Below, piece by piece: positions 682 to 51,318 of a stretch of 64,000 nt of DNA. A program made the translations under genes and the position numbers. Source of the DNA: Amoeboaphelidium protococcarum X5 (taxonomy: Eukaryota; Fungi; Aphelidiomycota). The notes below the pieces were generated by a model. The model made no database searches, was not told the DNA's origin, and was given only the letters and a program-made list of their open reading frames with translations. The stretch covers positions 708,164 through 772,163 of the forward strand of contig JALDTO010000098.1 in NCBI GenBank assembly GCA_023515725.1. The letters are read 5' to 3'. Within the stretch, counting starts at the first letter, position 1. Each line of letters starts with the position of its first letter.

Positions 682-1785
682 ATGATGATGTTGAAATATC
701 TGTCGCTGCTGATTTTGATTTAGTTTGTATTAGCTGTTGATTAGCTTGACCAGTTTTTGGATGCTGTGGATCAAGAGCCGGCGCGCCATAATCTTTTGTT
801 ATAACAGAACATTGGAGAGTAGCTGATTGTGCTACAGCCATAGAATGATTTTTGTATTACTAATTACTTGCTTGAATTAATCAGAAATTTACGCGTGTCC
901 GATCAGTTATACGCGTCGTTTGTGGGACTAGTAACGTCTGATGCTGGTAGACATATTCGTGCTTTTGTCATCAACGCCATGAAATCTCTTCGCTAGACGC
1001 GTGATGTACAGTGGGCCCTACAATGTGTCTAAGGCAATACATGTCGTCTACCGTCGTTCAAGCGTTACGTTGAGCTACTGCTTGCTGCGGATTCGACAAG
1101 CTTGGCATTAATTTAGAACTAGATTTTACCTACAATATTAATCATGCTGGCTTTGTTCATAAGATATGCTAATCCTCGTTTAAATGTGGTGATTCATTTG
1201 CTAGTGACCTCTTTATATATCTCATTCATTTTGTTGACGTAATTTATCACAATGAAGATGGATTTTCTCTATCATCATAATGCATTTGTGATCCCTGTTC
1301 GTTTAATTTAAGTGTCTCTGGTGCTGAATGTAATCTAATTTTCTGAGGCAATGTTCGACGTTGGTAGACGAACGTATGACATTCGAAGAGGGCGCGCTTT
1401 AGGTATTCCGCAAGGCCTTTTCATGCGTAATAATGAGGTGAATTATGGCTGTGGTACGCAGTTAACAAGACTGTCTGTGAATGATCATTTTGTTGAATCC
1501 CATGTTTTATCCGCCGAAGATGAGTGCTTATTATGCAGGAATGAGTTTGAAGCGTCTGAGATTGCGAAACGTCCGCGATGTAGTAGAAATATCTATCTTC
1601 ACAACAAATGTCTTTGCTAGTGGTTAATCACAAATCCCAAATGCTTCATTTGTAATACAAAGGATAGGTATTCTGAAGGCCCAAGTGGTGTCAAATAATT
1701 TGTGGAAGAACAGAATGCAGGGTAAGCACAAAGATAAGAATTCGAATCTTTGAGCCGTGATGAACAGACTGAGAATACTGTTTGA
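682..1785 (+). CDS. Signal-peptide, multi-TM RING-finger protein (putative E3 ligase), paralog 1, about 367 aa
   Basis: Open under table 6 from MMMLKYLSLLILIQFVLA to TGA; central hydrophobic segments; C-terminal CLLC...RPRCSRNIYLHNKCLCQWLITNPKCFIC RING-like motif. Confidence 0.75.
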
Positions 1786-2123
1786 GTTTAGTCTTATTCG
1801 AAGCTGAGTGCCGCGCAGAACATTCATATCCTTAATGAATGGAATGAATAAAGATTTAGGTGATTACAAATGCTCTCATATTAATAAGTTCAAGAGACAG
1901 CAGATGCCAAGCTTCTCTTGTTTGCCGCGTCGATTGATAGTATTGCACTGGTTAAATAGATTATGAAGCGGCATAATCAGTCAGTCGATACTACCGCAAT
2001 CTACTATACATAAAGTAAAACGATTTCCAAGCTCATTTCTCCATACTTTAGGCGTTTGATCGCTTTTCAGGCAAAAGAAAATAAAGTGCGGTGACAATAG
2101 CATTTTGTCATATATTCATTCAA

Positions 2124-3037
2124 ATGATATTCAATTGTGTCCTGTCCTTAGTTTTGCTTTAATTTGTATTTTCAGTTGATTTTCCGGTTGATTAGATTAA
2201 TTAGTTTCTGGATGCTGTGGATCAAGAGCCTGCGCGCCTTAATGTCGCGTTATAGTAGGACGTTGGCAGGTAGTTGATGGCTCTACCGCCTCAGAATGGT
2301 ATATGCGTTACCAATCGCTTGCTTGAATTAATCTAAAACACACGCGTGTCTGATCATTTGTACGCGCTATTCGTGGGTATAGCAACTTCTGGTGCTGGTA
2401 GAAATGCTCGCATCTATATCATTGACGTTTTGAAAACGCTTCGCCAGACCCGTGATGTCTAATGGACGCTGCGCTGTTTGGAAGACGGTGTTTGTCGTTT
2501 ACCATCTTTAAGGCGCTACTGGGAGCTACTGCTTGCTAAAGATTCAACAAGTTTAGCCTTGTACTGGAATTAAATAATGCCTACGTTTTTGATTATGATG
2601 GCTTTGCTCATGAGATTCTCTAATCGCCCTTTGAATGCGCTAGCTCAATTGCTCGTCTCCACTCTATACATCTCCTTTATTTTGTATACGACATTACTCA
2701 CTATGAAGATAGATCTTCCTTATAATCACGACGAACTTGTTGTAATTGCGCGTTTAATGTAAATGAATCTGGTGCTGGTCGTGATTTCTATTTCTGAAGC
2801 ATTATGGATTGGAAATGAATATATGCATGACATGCGCAGAAGGCGCGCATTAGGTATTCCGCAAGGTCTTTTCAATCGGAACAACGAGGTGATTTATGGT
2901 TATGGCACCTCATTAACCAGATTGCATGTTAATGACCATTTTGTTGAATCCCATGTTTTATCCGCCGAAGATGAGTGCTTATTATGCAGGAAAGAGTTTG
3001 AAGCGTCAGAGATTGCGAAACGTCCGAGATGTAATAA
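2124..3037 (+). pseudogene. RING-finger paralog 2, truncated mid-RING by the tyrosine-recombinase element
   Basis: Colinear with 682..1785 (e.g. VNDHFVESHVLSAEDECLLCR identical). Homology stops at RPRCNK where the element begins; the frame reads into the element to TGA at 3131. Confidence 0.8.
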
Positions 3038-5796
3038 AATGCTCTTATTGTTAAAAGTGCAAAGTGCAAAAACGGAAACCGTTAAGGTTGACGTTGGAAG
3101 AATGCGCGAGCGATCGAGCGCGCGACGGTGATCTCGCAGAAAACAGACAAGTCAGTTGTTTCAAACAAATCCTCAATGATTTTGCATTAAACTTTTTGTA
3201 TTAAATCCACTTTCAATCTCAGTCTCCATATTATCTGTCTTGTTCAAATACTACACTCATCCATGGTACCAGAGCAATTGTTTGTCTTGAAGCTAGTTGG
3301 TTTGAAGTTCCCCCAATGTGCGATGAACTTATCCAAATCACCGCCAAAGTGCTTTCTCAGACATTTCATGATCGGGCAGTATTGCTTCACGTAGAATGAT
3401 TTGGCGCCAGCTGATAACCCGACGGTTGAGCCAGGATCATCCACTGCAAGAATGGCCTCCAACTTCGCCATGGCAGTCTTCGCTTTTCTCACTTTCTCTC
3501 TCCCAGGCATATCATTCACAACTTCATCCTACTGAACAGCTGTGATGGCAGGTACAACATCAGCTACGTCAGTGTCTTCTTCATCGGATTCATAGAGTTC
3601 ATCATCAGAGTGAACCGCAGCTTGTTCACGTAACTATCTGGAAGAAGATTATTGAGAAGTCAGAGTAGATTTTGGCTACTTCAACTTAGCTGATTGAGTG
3701 GCAGCAATCAATCCATTCGCATAAAGCTCAAGCATCCTACGCAGCTCATTAATCTCCTCCGGAGTGGCATTAGGTGCAATTTCTTTCAACTTTGCCTCAA
3801 TAAGCTGCAGCACAGTCTCTTTCTTCTGCAACTGGAGAAGTGCATCGTAAATCACTCTAGGTCCACCAACTGCATCAACATCAGATAATCCACATAAGCT
3901 ACGAACAATCTCTTGACTCACCTGCTGCAGACAAAAATTGCCTCTAGAATGGGCAGCATTCAGACTGCGAGCCATCTATAGCTACTCACAGTAGGCTGAT
4001 CTGAATTTGCTTACCACGGAAGACACGTCCAAACGTCTAGTCTTCGCTAATTCTAGCAAATAGCTAGCATCCTTCTTATACAATGCGGCATTAGCGGACG
4101 AAGCGTGTCGCGCACTCTTAGTGATGTCAATCTCTGATCCCATTCCCCAAACAGCAAGCAAATAGCCAGTCTTCCTACTAGTGTGCGTACCAAATTTACC
4201 ATCGGGATTGCCGGTAGCAATCTTACAAGCTTTCTGATACTGCCTATGATAAGATACGTAAGAGATGTTGTACGCCGCATGCCCAACTTGCTTCACAGCA
4301 TCCAGTGTACTCTCTTGAGGGAACAAGAATCCAGTTCTAATCCCAGAAATAAAAATCCACGTCAAAAGCGCACGAACCGGGCACAATTCGGGCACATCAT
4401 AATCCGTCCAAAGAGTCAAGCACACTCTAACACGATCAGACTTGCCTTTAATGTAGAAAGCAAGGGAAGATATACTGCCATCACTTTGAAAGGTCGCAAG
4501 ATCCTTGTTGAGACAATTTTCCAGCCTAGGATCATGAATTTTCAAATCGGTGACTTCATCATTGCGCAGAAATAGCTTGATACTAACGATAATCATCGTC
4601 CACATCATGAATGACTTCGCATCATTTTTCGAGATGAAATACTCGCGGAGACGTAGTAATTCCCAAGGTGTGAGCGGCTAGCTGCCTTCGGACACGTAGC
4701 TGCATCCATCGCGGGAGTTCAATCTCTACATGTTAGTCATGAGGGAAGAATTCTTTGGATCTCCACCCAGCCAAATACGAGGAGCCATCGGATGGAACCG
4801 ACAGCCAGATCTATCACCACGCTCAGAACGTTGGATGCACTCTTCGCAGATATCTCTGTACTCCCCCCTCTAATTACGACTATCATGCAGCACAGAGACA
4901 GCCGATAACAACTGGTCAACATTCTGTGGCATATTCCAACCACCCTAGCACTTGATATCGTGCCCATAGACACATTTCACAGCGTTGCCATTCTCGTCTT
5001 TTAGCAAAGAACCCTTCTCATTACGCTTGAACTTGATAAACAAAATGATGCTCTTGGCGTTCATTGACGGTGTGTACTGCGGGGGGTTAGGAAGCAGCAT
5101 TAAACTCGAGCTGTAGTCACCAATTAGCGCAAAAAAGTACCGCAATCCTCTGTAATGCTTCTAGTAGGCTTACATACTATTCACAGCCAAAGGCCTACCG
5201 CCAGTGAGTGGCACAGATACGTCGGATCGAGTCAACCTCAGCAGCTTCAACGTCTCTCCAATGCCTTCATCCAGCTTATACTTGTACGCCGCTTCAATGC
5301 GATACACATGGCTGTTCTCCGACTTCTTGCGTCTCTTCACCTTCTTCGCCAACTGCTCATCATCCAGACCATCATCAGAGTCGTAATCGTCGTCGTCATC
5401 TTCATCTTCATTCTCCAGCTACCTATTGAAAGCAGCACTGACTTGAGCAGAACTTTGTGAAGTGATATCAGCAGTTTGATTCATGCTAACAACACTTGTT
5501 TCAGCCTCGCACCCAGCCAGACCAGAACTTGAGGAGGCGGATACGCCGACACTACTGCCAACACCAGCACACTCATCAACGGCTGGGATGCCAGTACTAC
5601 TGTTGGAGGTGGTGATACCACCTCCAGATGGCTACGAGTCACTCTACACTGCTCTAGAACGCTTCCTGCCAGACATGCGAGACGGTCGAGATTGTAACAA
5701 AGCGAGTTCGGTGCGTTTCTCCGGGTGCAAGGTGCAAAACACTACCGGTGCAAAAGAAAACAAGCGTTTTATTTGTTTTAAAAGAGTCAGATACAA
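3034..5796 (-). mobile_element. Crypton-like tyrosine-recombinase DNA transposon, copy A
   Basis: 3038..5796 is the reverse complement of 48556..51314 (2759 bp; paired ORF coordinates all sum to 54352). Termini on the element strand are TTGTAT and TTTTAT. No long TIRs, LTRs or reverse transcriptase. Confidence 0.9.
3244..5676 (-). CDS. Tyrosine recombinase of element copy A, 810 aa
   Basis: Single table-6 ORF with catalytic R-K-HxxR-H-Y signature: LFLRNDE, KGKSD, THTSRKTG, SARH, ALYKKD. Confidence 0.88.
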
Positions 5797-10239: not shown

Positions 10240-10796
10240 TTCGAGTTACTTGTTATCAACTTGCTCAATAATGAATTTAGAATATGCAAAATTACAACTT
10301 TCTATAAGAAGGTAATTATTGTCAATGCCAAAACTAAAAGTGTTTTTTCTAATAGACAGTCACTACTGTTAGTATTGACCTGTGAATAGAGATAGTACTT
10401 GTAATTGGAAGTGACCAGAAACAAAGAGACAAACAAAGAGAGAGAGCGAGAGCCAGAAAGTTTCAATTCGCTCGCTGCGACAAACAAAGCCGTATTTAAC
10501 CGCCGCCCCTTTCATTGGAGCGCCACTTTTTTTGAAACGACGATTCTTCTCGCCTCGCCGGCTTGACAACGTCGATCTATTGCTGCTTTTCACTTTTCGC
10601 ATCAGACGTTGTTTCAACTACTATTGTAGCAGAAATCTTGCTCATTATATGCATAACAGTAGTAAAAGTACGAATACTAAATTTCAATTACAAATTGCTA
10701 TATTCCCTGTTCAAAATAAAACATTCATTCAACATATTGATTTCTCAGCTATCGTATGAATGCTATCGCGTACATCCAGATTGCAAAATCACGAAA

Positions 10797-11792
10797 TCAG
10801 AACATCCTCTGCTGCTGGGCACTTCTAATGCCTTGAGATGATGATCCACCACCACCACCACCGCCCTACTTCATGTGGAATAGAGAACGGTGGTCCTTGA
10901 TAAAGTGGTCCAGCTTCTCTGGCTCTTCCCCAATCTTCTTCTTGGTATCATCACTGACAAAGTTCAGCTTTCCCTTGTTCACCAAATCAAATTCATCCAA
11001 CAGCTCACGTGTCAAAGTCTCTCTCAGACCCAACTGCTCTTGAAAGTAACGCTGAATATGCTGTGGATCAACCTTCTGATACTGCAACTGCAAGCCAACA
11101 TTCTTATTCAGGACATCAACTAGCTGACGAGGAGTTATGATGGTTGGACCAGACAGGCGATACATCTCCACATTGCCGCCACTCTTCAGCTTACGGCTCT
11201 CTTCACCCAGCACATCATTGCAGATAAACTTGACCACATCATGCATATTGATCATGGTGAACTTGGCATCTTCATTTAGCGGCCATTCCAACTTACTGCG
11301 CTCCATCATCATCAGACGGTGCAAGAACAGGGATTGCTGCAGACACACCAGACGGACGATACAGGCATCCTGGAAACCAAACTCGCGGAGACACTTTTCC
11401 ATATTGCAGTAATTCTACGCAGTCTTGTTGTCCTGACCATCAATACCAGCGCGACTGATCAGCATGACGCGTTATACCTGAGACTGATGGGCAGCTTTCA
11501 GAATTAACTTGGTCTAATCCACCATCTTTCCAGTGGCCCAGTCAGGTACTACGATCAGAGTATCGACACCCTCCAAATGCTTTCTCAGCTATCCTTCATC
11601 TGGCTGGTCACCCATTTCAATCACACACGCACCTTTAGACCACAGCAGACCACTACGCTCAGGATGACGGACTGTGCACCATAACTCACTGATCTAGCCT
11701 CTGAACTTTTCATTGTCCAACAGCTCGCACACCACGCCACAGCCCACAGCAGTATCAGCATTCGCCACAAACACTCTTCTCATATTGCTCAT
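10797..11792 (-). CDS. NmrA-like NAD(P)-binding Rossmann protein, copy 1, 331 aa
   Basis: MSNMRRVFVANADTAVG...TVRHPER...GVDTLIVVP...YRLSGPTIIT atypical SDR pattern; near-identical to 20569..21561. Confidence 0.75.
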
Positions 11793-12060
11793 TATACGAT
11801 ATACGATTGATTGTATATTCCAAATACTTTGATCAAGTAATAGCAATAGGAGAGAAAGAAAACCAATGAGGAGATGCAAAGTTATTCATATTGATGCCAT
11901 CAATGATCTGATGACAAACCGGTTTCAAATAGACATATCGGGATATCACTGATAATTGATCACTAAATAATCTATAATAAGGCTTCATGATAACTAATAT
12001 TTAAAATAATTTAGATTGCATCAGTAAGTCTACTCATTTAACTCTCATCACAGTTCACAT

Positions 12061-20209: not shown

Positions 20210-20568
20210 TCTCCTCTATTTAATGTTTAAATGAACCCCATGTTTTTGAAGAAATGAAGATTTTGGTGAAAATATATTGATCCTTTTTATCGTTTCTTTA
20301 CTTTGATCTTGTTCACTTTCCAGCCTAAGTCTAGCTCTCATAATTTTATCGCTATGGACGTATGGATTGCTGATGAAGCACTCTGAGTCCAGTTTGTTGG
20401 AGATATGTATTGAGGCGTTATATTGCCAGATTTGTCCACTTGGAACTGGTTTGGCATCAGATTATTGATGGCATCAATATGAATTACTTTGCGTCTCCTC
20501 ATTGATTCTCTTTCTCTTCTATTGCTATTACTTTATCAAAGTATTTGGAATATACAATCAATCGTATA

Positions 20569-21561
20569 ATGAGCAATATGAGAAGAGTGTTTGTGGCGAA
20601 TGCTGATACTGCTGTGGGCTGTGGCGTGGTGTGCGAGCTGTTGGACAATGAAAAGTTCAGAGGCTAAATCAATGAGTTATGGTGCACAGTCCGTCATCCA
20701 GAGCGTAGTGGTCTGCTGTGGTCTAAAGGTGCGTGTGTGATTGAGATGGGTGACCAGCCAGATGAAGGATAGCTGAGAAAGCATTTGGATGGTATCGATA
20801 CTTTGATCGTAGTACCTGACTGGGCCACTGGCAAGATGGTGGATTAGACCAAGTTAATTCTGAAAGCTGCCCACCAGTCTCAGGTATAACGCGTCATGCT
20901 GATCAGTCGCGCTGGTATTGATGGTCAAGACAACAAGACTGCGTAGAATTACTGCAATATGGAAAAGTGTCTTCGCGAGTTTGGTTTCCAGGATGCCTGT
21001 ATCGTCCGTCTGGTGTGTCTGCAGTAATCCCTGTTCTTGCACCGTCTGATGATGATGGAGCGCAGTAAGTTGGAATGGCCGCTGAATGAAGATGCCAAGT
21101 TTACCATGATCAATATGCGCAATGTGGTCAAGTTTATCTGCAATGATGTGCTGGGTGAAGAGAGCCGTAAGCTGAAGAGTGGCGGCAATGTGGAAATGTA
21201 TCGCCTGTCTGGTCCAACCATCATAACTCCTCGCCAACTAGTTGATGTGCTGAATAAGAATGTTGGCTTGCAGTTGCAGTATCAGAAGGTTGATCCACAT
21301 CATATTCAGCGCTACTTTCAAGAGCAGTTGGGTCTGAGAGAGACTTTGACACGTGAGCTGTTGGATGAATTCGATTTGGTGAACAAGGGAAAGCTGAACT
21401 TTGTCAGTGATGATACCAAGAAGAAGATTGGGGAAGAGCCAGAGAAGCTGGACCACTTTATCAAGGACCACCGTTCTCTCTTCCACATGAAGCAGGGCGG
21501 TGGTGGTGGTGGATCATCATCTCAAGGCATTAGAAGTGCCCAGCAGCAGAGGATGTTCTGA
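20569..21561 (+). CDS. NmrA-like protein, copy 2, 330 aa (inverted duplicate)
   Basis: Near-identical to 10797..11792, one Gly codon shorter. Confidence 0.75.
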
Positions 21562-21765
21562 ATTGGTGGTTACTGACGCGCGTTCTATGAATTTTATCAA
21601 TTTTTATGACAATTATTGAATGTATGAAATATTATTTTGCAATTATCTTCTTGCCTAGTTTATACATACTTCTCATATTTTCCATGATCACAAAACCCAA
21701 CATTAAAATCAACGCACAACTGACGAGCAATACTATATTCTTCACTGAATCAAAATTTAATGCTT

Positions 21766-47963: not shown

Positions 47964-48555
47964 TCATAAGTTGGTCAAAAGCTCATAAATACTCTGCAAC
48001 ACTTGCATAAACTTTGGCTTTCCAGCGAGAATGTCGAGCATCCTCTGTCGAAACTCGTTTCCTTTCACCTCACCACCAATAATGGCATCTTCAATTTAAT
48101 AGTAAATTTTCAAGTGACGTTTGCATGCTACAACATACCGGGGACCATAGCCACCGCAAAGTTCAATATAATCATGCCGGGAAACTTCCTGTGCAACTAC
48201 TGATAGCACACTGTCTGGCTTCTGCATCTCAGTTCCAACAATAGTGACTGTCGCAGTCTCGCATTTCAGCACAGCACGATGAACATCAGGAGAGAATCCA
48301 GGCAAGCGAAAAATGAATGCCCACGACTTTTTATCGCCAGTTTATTGATTAGTACGTGTTGACTCTAATGCTGAAAACACAACAGCACCAACAGGGACAA
48401 TCTGTTTCGCTTTGATATAGTCTATAATTGCATAAGCGCCCTCAAAGCCAACAGATGCACTAACTTCGATGAATTTAGCTCCATCGTCAACCATATGCTG
48501 GGCAGCCACGCACGCTTAATCAATCGTGGACACACCGGTTGCATAAAATACGCAA
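47964..48555 (-). pseudogene. Tandem DUF6506-like protein lacking its N-terminus, cut by element copy B
   Basis: Two repeats of a bacterial-type motif: ...TGVSTIDQACVAAQHMVDDGAKFIEVSASVG...VPVGAVVF and WAFIFRLPGFSPDVHRAVL...IELCGGYGP. The N-terminal part of repeat 1 is absent at the element junction. Confidence 0.65.
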
Positions 48556-51318
48556 TTGTATCTGACTCTTTTAAAACAAATAAAACGCTTGTTTTCTTTT
48601 GCACCGGTAGTGTTTTGCACCTTGCACCCGGAGAAACGCACCGAACTCGCTTTGTTACAATCTCGACCGTCTCGCATGTCTGGCAGGAAGCGTTCTAGAG
48701 CAGTGTAGAGTGACTCGTAGCCATCTGGAGGTGGTATCACCACCTCCAACAGTAGTACTGGCATCCCAGCCGTTGATGAGTGTGCTGGTGTTGGCAGTAG
48801 TGTCGGCGTATCCGCCTCCTCAAGTTCTGGTCTGGCTGGGTGCGAGGCTGAAACAAGTGTTGTTAGCATGAATCAAACTGCTGATATCACTTCACAAAGT
48901 TCTGCTCAAGTCAGTGCTGCTTTCAATAGGTAGCTGGAGAATGAAGATGAAGATGACGACGACGATTACGACTCTGATGATGGTCTGGATGATGAGCAGT
49001 TGGCGAAGAAGGTGAAGAGACGCAAGAAGTCGGAGAACAGCCATGTGTATCGCATTGAAGCGGCGTACAAGTATAAGCTGGATGAAGGCATTGGAGAGAC
49101 GTTGAAGCTGCTGAGGTTGACTCGATCCGACGTATCTGTGCCACTCACTGGCGGTAGGCCTTTGGCTGTGAATAGTATGTAAGCCTACTAGAAGCATTAC
49201 AGAGGATTGCGGTACTTTTTTGCGCTAATTGGTGACTACAGCTCGAGTTTAATGCTGCTTCCTAACCCCCCGCAGTACACACCGTCAATGAACGCCAAGA
49301 GCATCATTTTGTTTATCAAGTTCAAGCGTAATGAGAAGGGTTCTTTGCTAAAAGACGAGAATGGCAACGCTGTGAAATGTGTCTATGGGCACGATATCAA
49401 GTGCTAGGGTGGTTGGAATATGCCACAGAATGTTGACCAGTTGTTATCGGCTGTCTCTGTGCTGCATGATAGTCGTAATTAGAGGGGGGAGTACAGAGAT
49501 ATCTGCGAAGAGTGCATCCAACGTTCTGAGCGTGGTGATAGATCTGGCTGTCGGTTCCATCCGATGGCTCCTCGTATTTGGCTGGGTGGAGATCCAAAGA
49601 ATTCTTCCCTCATGACTAACATGTAGAGATTGAACTCCCGCGATGGATGCAGCTACGTGTCCGAAGGCAGCTAGCCGCTCACACCTTGGGAATTACTACG
49701 TCTCCGCGAGTATTTCATCTCGAAAAATGATGCGAAGTCATTCATGATGTGGACGATGATTATCGTTAGTATCAAGCTATTTCTGCGCAATGATGAAGTC
49801 ACCGATTTGAAAATTCATGATCCTAGGCTGGAAAATTGTCTCAACAAGGATCTTGCGACCTTTCAAAGTGATGGCAGTATATCTTCCCTTGCTTTCTACA
49901 TTAAAGGCAAGTCTGATCGTGTTAGAGTGTGCTTGACTCTTTGGACGGATTATGATGTGCCCGAATTGTGCCCGGTTCGTGCGCTTTTGACGTGGATTTT
50001 TATTTCTGGGATTAGAACTGGATTCTTGTTCCCTCAAGAGAGTACACTGGATGCTGTGAAGCAAGTTGGGCATGCGGCGTACAACATCTCTTACGTATCT
50101 TATCATAGGCAGTATCAGAAAGCTTGTAAGATTGCTACCGGCAATCCCGATGGTAAATTTGGTACGCACACTAGTAGGAAGACTGGCTATTTGCTTGCTG
50201 TTTGGGGAATGGGATCAGAGATTGACATCACTAAGAGTGCGCGACACGCTTCGTCCGCTAATGCCGCATTGTATAAGAAGGATGCTAGCTATTTGCTAGA
50301 ATTAGCGAAGACTAGACGTTTGGACGTGTCTTCCGTGGTAAGCAAATTCAGATCAGCCTACTGTGAGTAGCTATAGATGGCTCGCAGTCTGAATGCTGCC
50401 CATTCTAGAGGCAATTTTTGTCTGCAGCAGGTGAGTCAAGAGATTGTTCGTAGCTTATGTGGATTATCTGATGTTGATGCAGTTGGTGGACCTAGAGTGA
50501 TTTACGATGCACTTCTCCAGTTGCAGAAGAAAGAGACTGTGCTGCAGCTTATTGAGGCAAAGTTGAAAGAAATTGCACCTAATGCCACTCCGGAGGAGAT
50601 TAATGAGCTGCGTAGGATGCTTGAGCTTTATGCGAATGGATTGATTGCTGCCACTCAATCAGCTAAGTTGAAGTAGCCAAAATCTACTCTGACTTCTCAA
50701 TAATCTTCTTCCAGATAGTTACGTGAACAAGCTGCGGTTCACTCTGATGATGAACTCTATGAATCCGATGAAGAAGACACTGACGTAGCTGATGTTGTAC
50801 CTGCCATCACAGCTGTTCAGTAGGATGAAGTTGTGAATGATATGCCTGGGAGAGAGAAAGTGAGAAAAGCGAAGACTGCCATGGCGAAGTTGGAGGCCAT
50901 TCTTGCAGTGGATGATCCTGGCTCAACCGTCGGGTTATCAGCTGGCGCCAAATCATTCTACGTGAAGCAATACTGCCCGATCATGAAATGTCTGAGAAAG
51001 CACTTTGGCGGTGATTTGGATAAGTTCATCGCACATTGGGGGAACTTCAAACCAACTAGCTTCAAGACAAACAATTGCTCTGGTACCATGGATGAGTGTA
51101 GTATTTGAACAAGACAGATAATATGGAGACTGAGATTGAAAGTGGATTTAATACAAAAAGTTTAATGCAAAATCATTGAGGATTTGTTTGAAACAACTGA
51201 CTTGTCTGTTTTCTGCGAGATCACCGTCGCGCGCTCGATCGCTCGCGCATTCTTCCAACGTCAACCTTAACGGTTTCCGTTTTTGCACTTTGCACTTTTA
51301 ACAATAAGAGCATTGTAT
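48556..51318 (+). mobile_element. Crypton-like tyrosine-recombinase DNA transposon, copy B
   Basis: Inverted twin of 3038..5796; bounded by direct repeat TTGTAT at 48556-48561 and 51313-51318 (ATTGTAT including the preceding base). Confidence 0.9.
48676..51108 (+). CDS. Tyrosine recombinase of element copy B, 810 aa
   Basis: ATG TCT GGC AGG AAG to ...ECSI-TGA, open under table 6 with about 15 TAA/TAG codons; intact R-K-HxxR-H-Y residues. Confidence 0.88.

Follow-up and report, generated by a model that had tools for sequence, protein, structure and literature searches.

What kind of element sits twice, in identical form, in one stretch of an aphelid genome, and where exactly do its ends join the host DNA? 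The stretch is a window of 64,000 nucleotides from Amoeboaphelidium protococcarum X5 (assembly GCA_023515725.1, contig JALDTO010000098.1, positions 708,164 to 772,163 of the forward strand), and the element measures 2,763 bp, counting the hexamers that bound it on both sides. Copy B lies at 48556-51318 on the plus strand and copy A at 3034-5796 on the minus strand; the two are 100% identical over 2,763 nt and inverted to each other, with 42.8 kb between them. An original prediction, made from the letters of the window, had taken their ends for the core and arm sites of a recombination system with the hexamer TTGTAT as its overlap. On the features tested, the repeat is very probably a recently active transposon of a known class, a Crypton-type DNA transposon with a Cre-like tyrosine recombinase as its sole protein. 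The Crypton class is already known; the new detail is the anatomy of the ends, the target and the crossover, which maps to the TT of the terminal hexamer.

Cryptons encode only a tyrosine recombinase and have neither inverted nor long direct terminal repeats, and their 4- to 6-bp terminal direct repeats have been read as recombination substrates; in the 2011 survey of the class, no nucleotide motif was conserved between families, and no transposition had yet been studied (PMC3212892). The design that the original prediction had put forward as a compact eukaryotic recombination system is not new but that of the known Cryptons (PMC3212892, PMC9977147). The first live Crypton transposition was reported in 2023 for CryptonF-1_cRei of Chlamydomonas reinhardtii, which combines a constant terminus (CACCG) with the target CAYCG, excises cleanly and gains copies, and is found with rearrangements that have the target motif at breakpoints devoid of the element (PMC9977147). 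According to a 2026 paper on Glomhopper, the short repeats stem from microhomology to the target and not from duplication. Our literature search on Cryptons found no description of an upstream target half-site, a right-end RTAA motif or subterminal repeat clusters, and no paper on aphelid transposons was found.

Results

A recombinase-only element in identical copies

The host assembly comprises 23.6 Mb in 346 contigs, and element copies were counted across all of it. At least 19 full copies, about 100% identical and each flanked by different sequence, are present together with 2 nearly full copies and about 10 fragments at contig ends; since all copies are identical, variation within the family is uninformative. 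No long direct or inverted terminal repeats were found at the ends of the element, and it has no reverse transcriptase, DDE transposase, long terminal repeats or split repeats, which sets it apart from DIRS, Ngaro, Tec and MarCry. Frame 1 is open over 850 codons when TAA and TAG are taken as sense and holds 13 TAG, 4 TAA and one TGA. The single open reading frame (ORF) of 810 codons (48676-51108, plus strand) runs from an ATG at 48676 to a TGA stop at 51106-51108 with 17 in-frame TAA/TAG as sense codons; it fills 2,433 of the 2,763 bp, and there is no second ORF. Under the standard code, the whole window contains no ORF of at least 300 codons, and therefore, the reassignment of TAA/TAG belongs to the host.

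The in-frame TAA/TAG made it necessary to search the protein as separate stop-free pieces, the largest of which has 231 aa (49675-50367, plus strand). None of the seven pieces matched a Pfam family at the curated cutoff, and a sequence search of the PDB with the protein gave no match. An exhaustive HMMER search with the 231-aa piece retrieved 700 homologues at E < 1e-3 among 1.84 billion representatives, compared to only two matches in a word-index protein search; the named homologues are hypothetical proteins of the chytrids Zopfochytrium, Blyttiomyces and Physocladia and of the oomycete Aphanomyces. An alignment of 47 sequences revealed conservation of R38, K79, H165-x-x-R168, R190-H191 and Y200 of the piece, which represents the tyrosine-recombinase catalytic domain (R371, K412, H498, R501, H524 and Y533 in ORF numbering). 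The R-to-H and H-to-Y spacings of 23 and 9 residues equal those of Cre. The AlphaFold (AF2) model of the piece has a pLDDT of 97, and its best PDB matches in Foldseek are XerH, Cre, XerA, lambda Int and Tn1549 Int. The model of a full-length homologue, P0005 (pLDDT of 84), aligns with Cre over both the core-binding and the catalytic domain (Z 15.9 over 287 residues); P0005 also matches Ndc10 (Z 8-9) and QRICH1 (Z 6.1), both known to be Crypton derived (PMC3212892), and another homologue, P0010, has a weak NDC10_II match. Taken together, the models and the alignment show that the element's protein is a true tyrosine recombinase of the Cre/Xer type, in which the set R-K-HxxR-H-Y is intact.

In the P0005 model, a disordered linker connects a small helical domain at the C terminus to the rest of the protein, and this domain aligns with the C terminus of the element's own protein. 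The region (50824-51105, plus strand), delimited by the alignment with relatives and by the P0005 model, has a conserved Cys/His pattern and is a candidate second DNA-binding module. A scan of 21 C-terminal domains found no Pfam family. GCR1_C, the CryptonF marker, was found neither in the pieces of the element's protein (E up to 1) nor in 10 full-length homologues (E up to 0.01) nor in the 21 C-terminal domains (E up to 1), and DUF3504, the CryptonA marker, was found neither in the pieces nor in the 10 homologues. Hence, both markers are missing from the element's protein.

The crossover maps to two bases

All extractable ends in the genome were collected, which gave 25 left and 23 right junctions. 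The left hexamer is TTGTAT in 24 of 25 ends and CTGTAT in the remaining one (locus L019). The right hexamer varies and comprises TTTTAT (eight ends), TTGTAT and TTATAT (four each), TTGTAC and TTTTAC (three each) and TTATAC (one), or TTDTAY. The bounds that the original prediction had named, left and right, TTGTAT/TTGTAT in copy B and TTGTAT/TTTTAT in copy A, are correct, and apart from L019, terminal TTGTAT/TTDTAY is found at every genomic copy. In all 16 full copies with unequal hexamers, the variant bases of the target (positions 3 and 6) are at the right end, and at the left they were found in 0/16. With variant bases on the right only and a constant left end, GTAT must be the element's and DTAY the target's. 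The left hexamer of copy B (48556-48561, plus strand) thus consists of an element-borne GTAT at bases 3 to 6 and a TT common with the target, and its right hexamer, TTGTAT (51313-51318, plus strand), is the target's own TTDTAY.

That the right hexamer is preexisting host sequence is indicated by intact copies of MITE X, a miniature inverted-repeat transposable element (MITE) of 150 bp with TGTRAGA inverted ends that is unrelated to the Crypton (L010, L033, L036-L039 and L053; e.g., G000:C233:294171-294320). Intact MITE X represents the empty site and reads ...GATATTGTATTTTATCC..., and the split copy at L010 reads ...GATATTGTA, followed by TTGTAT and the element and then by TTTTATCC.... From this comparison, no host base was duplicated on insertion, and one of the hexamers was there before. 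For copy A, a 79% paralogue of the flank runs through the reconstructed empty site, but similarity stops 2 nt past the hexamer, which gives weak support for the absence of a duplication; the flank of copy B is unique in the genome, with no homeologous empty site. L019, with CTGTAT at the left and TTTTAC at the right, is explained if the target was CTTTAC and crossover took place after position 1. Taken together with the segregation of position 3, this bounds the inherited crossover on both sides. In sum, the crossover maps to TT, and integration is conservative, without any duplication of host sequence. All 23 right ends keep AGCA before TT, and none of the 25 left flanks has AGCA.

The genomic target is a palindrome

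Conservation extends into the host sequence. Among the 25 left flanks, position -8 is R in 25, -7 is T in 24, -6 is A in 25 and -5 is W in 23, and on the other side of the element, 16 of the 23 right flanks have a T at +7. The target consensus is a-RTAW-NNNN-TT-DTAY-t; its left half-site, located at -8 to -5 from the left hexamer in the logo of the 25 flanks, reads ATAC in copy B (48548-48551, plus strand). RTA and TAY are reverse complements of each other at a distance of 8 bp, an arrangement like that of loxP-type core sites. Nicks 6 bp apart would put the right-hand nick at TT|D, where the crossover maps. In the window, the full motif was counted 7 times (once at the left junction of copy A) versus 4.8 times expected from shuffles, and genome-wide, roughly two thousand sites would thus be on offer. 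The target is thus wider than the TTKTAT proposed originally and includes an upstream RTAW half-site that had been missed. The general idea of the prediction, a recombinase site at the ends together with accessory repeats, holds, but the half-sites are RTAW/DTAY and not AAGAG/CTCTT. The latter arms, like TTTTAA/TTAAAA, do exist at the ends of the element, but they are at chance level (p about 0.04-0.14 versus shuffles and versus natural positions in the window), are unequally spaced and are not found in related families.

MITE X is a hot spot for the Crypton. It has an internal hairpin (CCTCAAAGGTG...CACCTTTGAGATC) and at least 8 intact copies, and its internal ATTGTATTTTAT amounts to two overlapping perfect target sites. 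At least 2 independent copies, L010 and L027, were struck at the identical position, and the half-X flanks of L001 and L009 are signs of more insertions. At L001 (G000:C179:511881-514643), only the right half of MITE X is present, and the non-X left flank has an RTA motif of its own (ATA at -8 to -6); at L009 (G000:C233:286510-289272), only the left half is present. The pair looks like the product of a flank exchange (translocation) between two element copies, of the kind described for CryptonF-1_cRei, with an assembly misjoin as an alternative. At L032 (G000:C179:59268-59372 and upstream), TTGTAT marks the exact junction between the right half of MITE X and unrelated DNA with ATA at -8 to -6, and no element is present; this junction is a candidate for an element-free breakpoint made by the recombinase or for an excision remnant. 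As for copies A and B, the same inverted arrangement gave repeated inversions in Chlamydomonas, and the orientation of the interval between them could differ between strains.

Subterminal repeats and the right-end motif

The ends also carry short repeats away from the crossover. The direct repeat TTTTGCACYTTGCAC is present at 48613-48627 and 51281-51295, as the original prediction had reported, with 0.03 chance matches expected in the window, and another TTGCAC is located at 48599. Of the six TTGCAC copies in the element, five are no more than 100 nt away from an end, and these five share the plus strand. The three left repeats (48597-48627) begin at distances of 44, 60 and 67 nt from the left end, upstream of the ATG, and the two right repeats (51281-51295) start 30 and 23 nt before the right hexamer. 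When the element ends were shuffled, 0/5,000 shuffles reached five copies of any 6-mer. The repeats had been proposed to be arm sites, and as far as their nonrandom occurrence and equivalents in four related families go, this proposal holds; by analogy, the clusters are most likely putative accessory (arm-type) sites that would bring the ends together, and for the binding role itself, they are candidates. TTGCAC, like TTGTAT, fits TTGYAY and could be taken for a core-like site; this reading was rejected, as the repeats of the relatives are unlike the core. The GC-rich imperfect palindrome noticed at 51229-51248 is real; it lies in the 3' untranslated part and has 13-nt overlapping arms that are 85% complementary, and no counterpart was found in the relatives examined.

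The right hexamer is preceded by ATAA-GAGCA (51304-51312, plus strand), with RTAA at -9 to -6 before the terminal repeat. This motif is a candidate left half-site of the donor site, and its RTAA-N5 register was found in three families, namely, the element, P0152 (GTAA-GAGCC-CTTTAT) and a family from Zopfochytrium (ATAA-TTGTA-TTTTGTC).

Ends of related families

Ends could be defined or partly defined in four other families (P0152, Zopfochytrium, Aphanomyces and P0010), a small cross-family sample. A scan of metagenomes with a 10-row alignment yielded 13 loci, mostly short, with ends definable in none. The metagenomic P0152 family (L079-L081) is 42% identical to the element. Its right end, ...GTAA-GAGCC-CTTTAT or -CTATAT, has TAAGAGC and TNTAT in common with the element, in the same register. 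CCCTTTAT recurs upstream, with ATAT at -8 to -5 before it (RTAW in 1/1, L079), and four copies of TGGTTCAA follow 50 to 83 nt after this upstream CCCTTTAT; the right core is preceded, at 31 and 21 nt, by two copies in inverted form, TTGAACCA, similar in number and distance to the right repeats of the element. The left boundary of P0152 is a putative one, because the contigs compared share 119 nt upstream of it. In L079, a gene with a Pfam Phage_integrase domain (L079:91-1068) is located directly upstream of the Crypton-like gene, and the 119 nt between these two genes are common to contigs with differing right flanks; either the element is larger there or it has inserted into another recombinase element.

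The Zopfochytrium family has four copies of 3.75 kb that are 99.9% identical. Its terminal repeat, TTTTGTC, is constant at the left and reads TTTTGTT once at the right; ATAA is found at -9 to -6 before the right repeat, RT at -8 and -7 in 4/4 left flanks, and GACAA motifs near both ends. In the Aphanomyces family (three copies), the left core is ATGTAT, RTAW occupies -8 to -5 in 3/3 flanks, two of which are TA rich, and the first of three copies of CTCCTACC lies 42 nt inside the left end. The P0010 family (L082) has CCCATACA four times upstream and twice downstream of the ORF. Three features are conserved across families, namely, a T-rich core that is fixed at the left and target-like at the right, an RTAA that precedes the right core by five bases and family-specific short repeats at conserved positions.

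A single-copy paralogue in the same genome, L075 (G000:C264:1094545-1095240), is 40% identical to the element in the catalytic domain and has no TTGCAC clusters. Its TGA-bounded frame (L075:361-2955) comprises 864 codons with 16 in-frame TAA/TAG, and the paralogue may represent an old second family of Cryptons or else a gene that was domesticated.

Two further repeats were seen in the window. A second inverted pair, at 10787-11942 and 20426-21571, is about 1.1 kb long and 90-97% identical, with members 8.5-10.6 kb apart, and is unrelated to the Crypton. A tandem duplication at 725-3039, with a period of 1,451 bp and 73-86% identity, terminates at the right end of copy A.

Discussion

A model of integration at TT

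In our model, the donor site is formed by the joined ends of the element, ATAA-GAGCA-TT-GTAT, and a circular intermediate or a tandem joint would read ...AATAAGAGCA-TT-GTATCTGACTC..., the circle being the form that we infer. The target would offer its inverted half-sites RTA/TAY in a loxP-like manner, with the crossover TT at the right edge of a presumed 6-bp spacer. With crossover at TT, GTAT stays at the left end of the element, and DTAY of the target ends up at the right end. A Cre-like two-domain recombinase with its tethered C-terminal Cys/His domain may supply the binding to these motifs, and the TTGCAC clusters, three at the left and two at the right, would bring the ends together like the arm sites of lambda or Tn916.

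However, several observations weigh against this model. The donor RTAA is located 1 bp further from TT than the target RTAW, resulting in a 7-bp versus a 6-bp spacer, which is not predicted by a symmetric Cre-like synapse; the offset is conserved across the three families with the motif. A search for the joined element ends, with 2 mismatches allowed, found neither a circle junction nor a tandem joint in the assembly, and the left limit of the crossover comes from a single copy, L019. Furthermore, Pfam detects no integrase domain in the pieces of the element's protein, the left and right repeats of P0152 are inverted and not direct, and no obvious subterminal repeats were seen in L094, L083 and L075, that is, in 3 of 8 related loci or families examined.

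How the strands are exchanged has to be considered in the light of the one-way segregation of the hexamers. Tyrosine recombinases normally use 6- to 8-bp overlaps, and integrases of the CTnDOT and Tn916 type tolerate heterology between sites. Both facts fit the original proposal of TTGTAT as a mismatch-tolerant 6-bp overlap that is cut on both sides, with AAGAG/CTCTT and TTTTAA/TTAAAA as core arms, and so does the presence of the hexamer at both ends of every copy. However, exchange of both strands across a mismatched overlap would leave heteroduplex at both junctions, and after replication, both arrangements should be equally frequent. The target variant would then be expected on the left in half of the insertions, but segregation was 16 to 0 and the left end never has the variant. 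In addition, position 1 of the left hexamer in L019 comes from the target, the conserved RTAW half-site sits outside the hexamer, and the arms, at chance level in the element, are not in the P0152, Zopfochytrium and Aphanomyces families, all of which makes the proposal improbable. The heteroduplex argument applies equally to NNNNTT as the overlap, i.e., to a full two-strand exchange over a heterologous spacer of 6 to 7 bp (NNNNTT versus AGCATT) as in Tn916 or CTnDOT, with repair or selection fixing the arrangement afterwards. The geometry would fit, with half-sites 8 bp apart, and 2 bp of homology next to one cleavage site are reminiscent of IntDOT, but with AGCA in 23/23 right ends and 25 unrelated left flanks, there is zero variation in coupling sequence, and repair would have to be fully directional; we regard this route as very improbable.

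An insertion by cut-and-paste or another mechanism that is independent of the recombinase, with TT as a 2-bp target site duplication and the recombinase in another role, would leave GTAT...GCA between two TTs and be indistinguishable by sequence from a crossover in a common TT. However, terminal inverted repeats and a second ORF are both lacking in the element, 2.76 kb leaves no room for a DDE or HUH enzyme, and the target resembles the element's GTAT beyond TT, as in other Cryptons, so that the chances of this explanation are minimal. Segregation of 16 to 0 leaves either the exchange of one strand pair or fully directional repair, and at low confidence, we favor the former. In this reading, only one productive strand exchange would take place, at TT|D on one side of the spacer, leaving a Holliday junction for replication or a host resolvase to complete. 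It is based on the donor spacer being 1 bp longer than that of the target and on homology limited to TT, and we put it forward as a tentative idea that is, taken by itself, rather unlikely.

Significance and comparison with known systems

Among the DNA transposons of eukaryotes, no class has been studied less than the Cryptons. Here, about 20-30 identical copies give a clean target logo, and with it a palindromic target of two half-sites, a crossover of two bases, a right-end motif in three distant families and subterminal repeats that are conserved in position. About 120 bp of cis elements and one protein are a small set that is open to direct excision and integration assays. The inverted copies 42.8 kb apart and the swapped flanks elsewhere suggest that the element may reshape the genome like its relative in Chlamydomonas. 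A single strand exchange, if true, would explain why the arrangement is fixed as element left and target right, and also how Cryptons gain copies in spite of their excise-and-integrate appearance, a puzzle that was stated for Chlamydomonas.

In integron attC x attI recombination and in CTX-phage integration by XerCD, one strand exchange is completed by replication. By analogy, such a course would explain both the one inherited arrangement and the rising copy number of the element; in contrast to these systems, the element gives no evidence of a single-stranded or folded substrate. With lambda Int and the integrases of Tn916, Tn1549 and CTnDOT, it has in common short repeats inside both ends and off the crossover, an extra tethered domain and tolerance of nonidentical cores. 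However, its extra domain is C-terminal and Cys/His rich and not an N-terminal arm-binding domain, and it has no variable coupling sequences. Like Cre-loxP, XerH-difH and Flp-FRT, the element combines a two-domain fold (Z 15.9 to Cre) with inverted half-sites 8 bp apart in the target and a crossover where a 6-bp stagger would put one nick. Unlike in these systems, the half-sites show only 3 to 4 bp of visible specificity, donor and target spacers share only TT, with the donor spacer 1 bp longer, and the arrangement of only one strand is inherited.

CryptonF-1_cRei differs in its host lineage and genetic code, and in the element of A. protococcarum, a C-terminal Cys/His domain takes the place of GCR1_C. 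The element agrees with CryptonF-1_cRei and the Goodwin model in being a recombinase-only transposon without inverted repeats and with a rising copy number. Both elements have one constant terminus (CACCG there, TTGTAT here) and a degenerate target (CAYCG there, TTDTAY here). The CryptonF-1_cRei breakpoints that carry the target motif have possible analogues here in the swapped flanks of L001 and L009 and in the element-free junction of L032.

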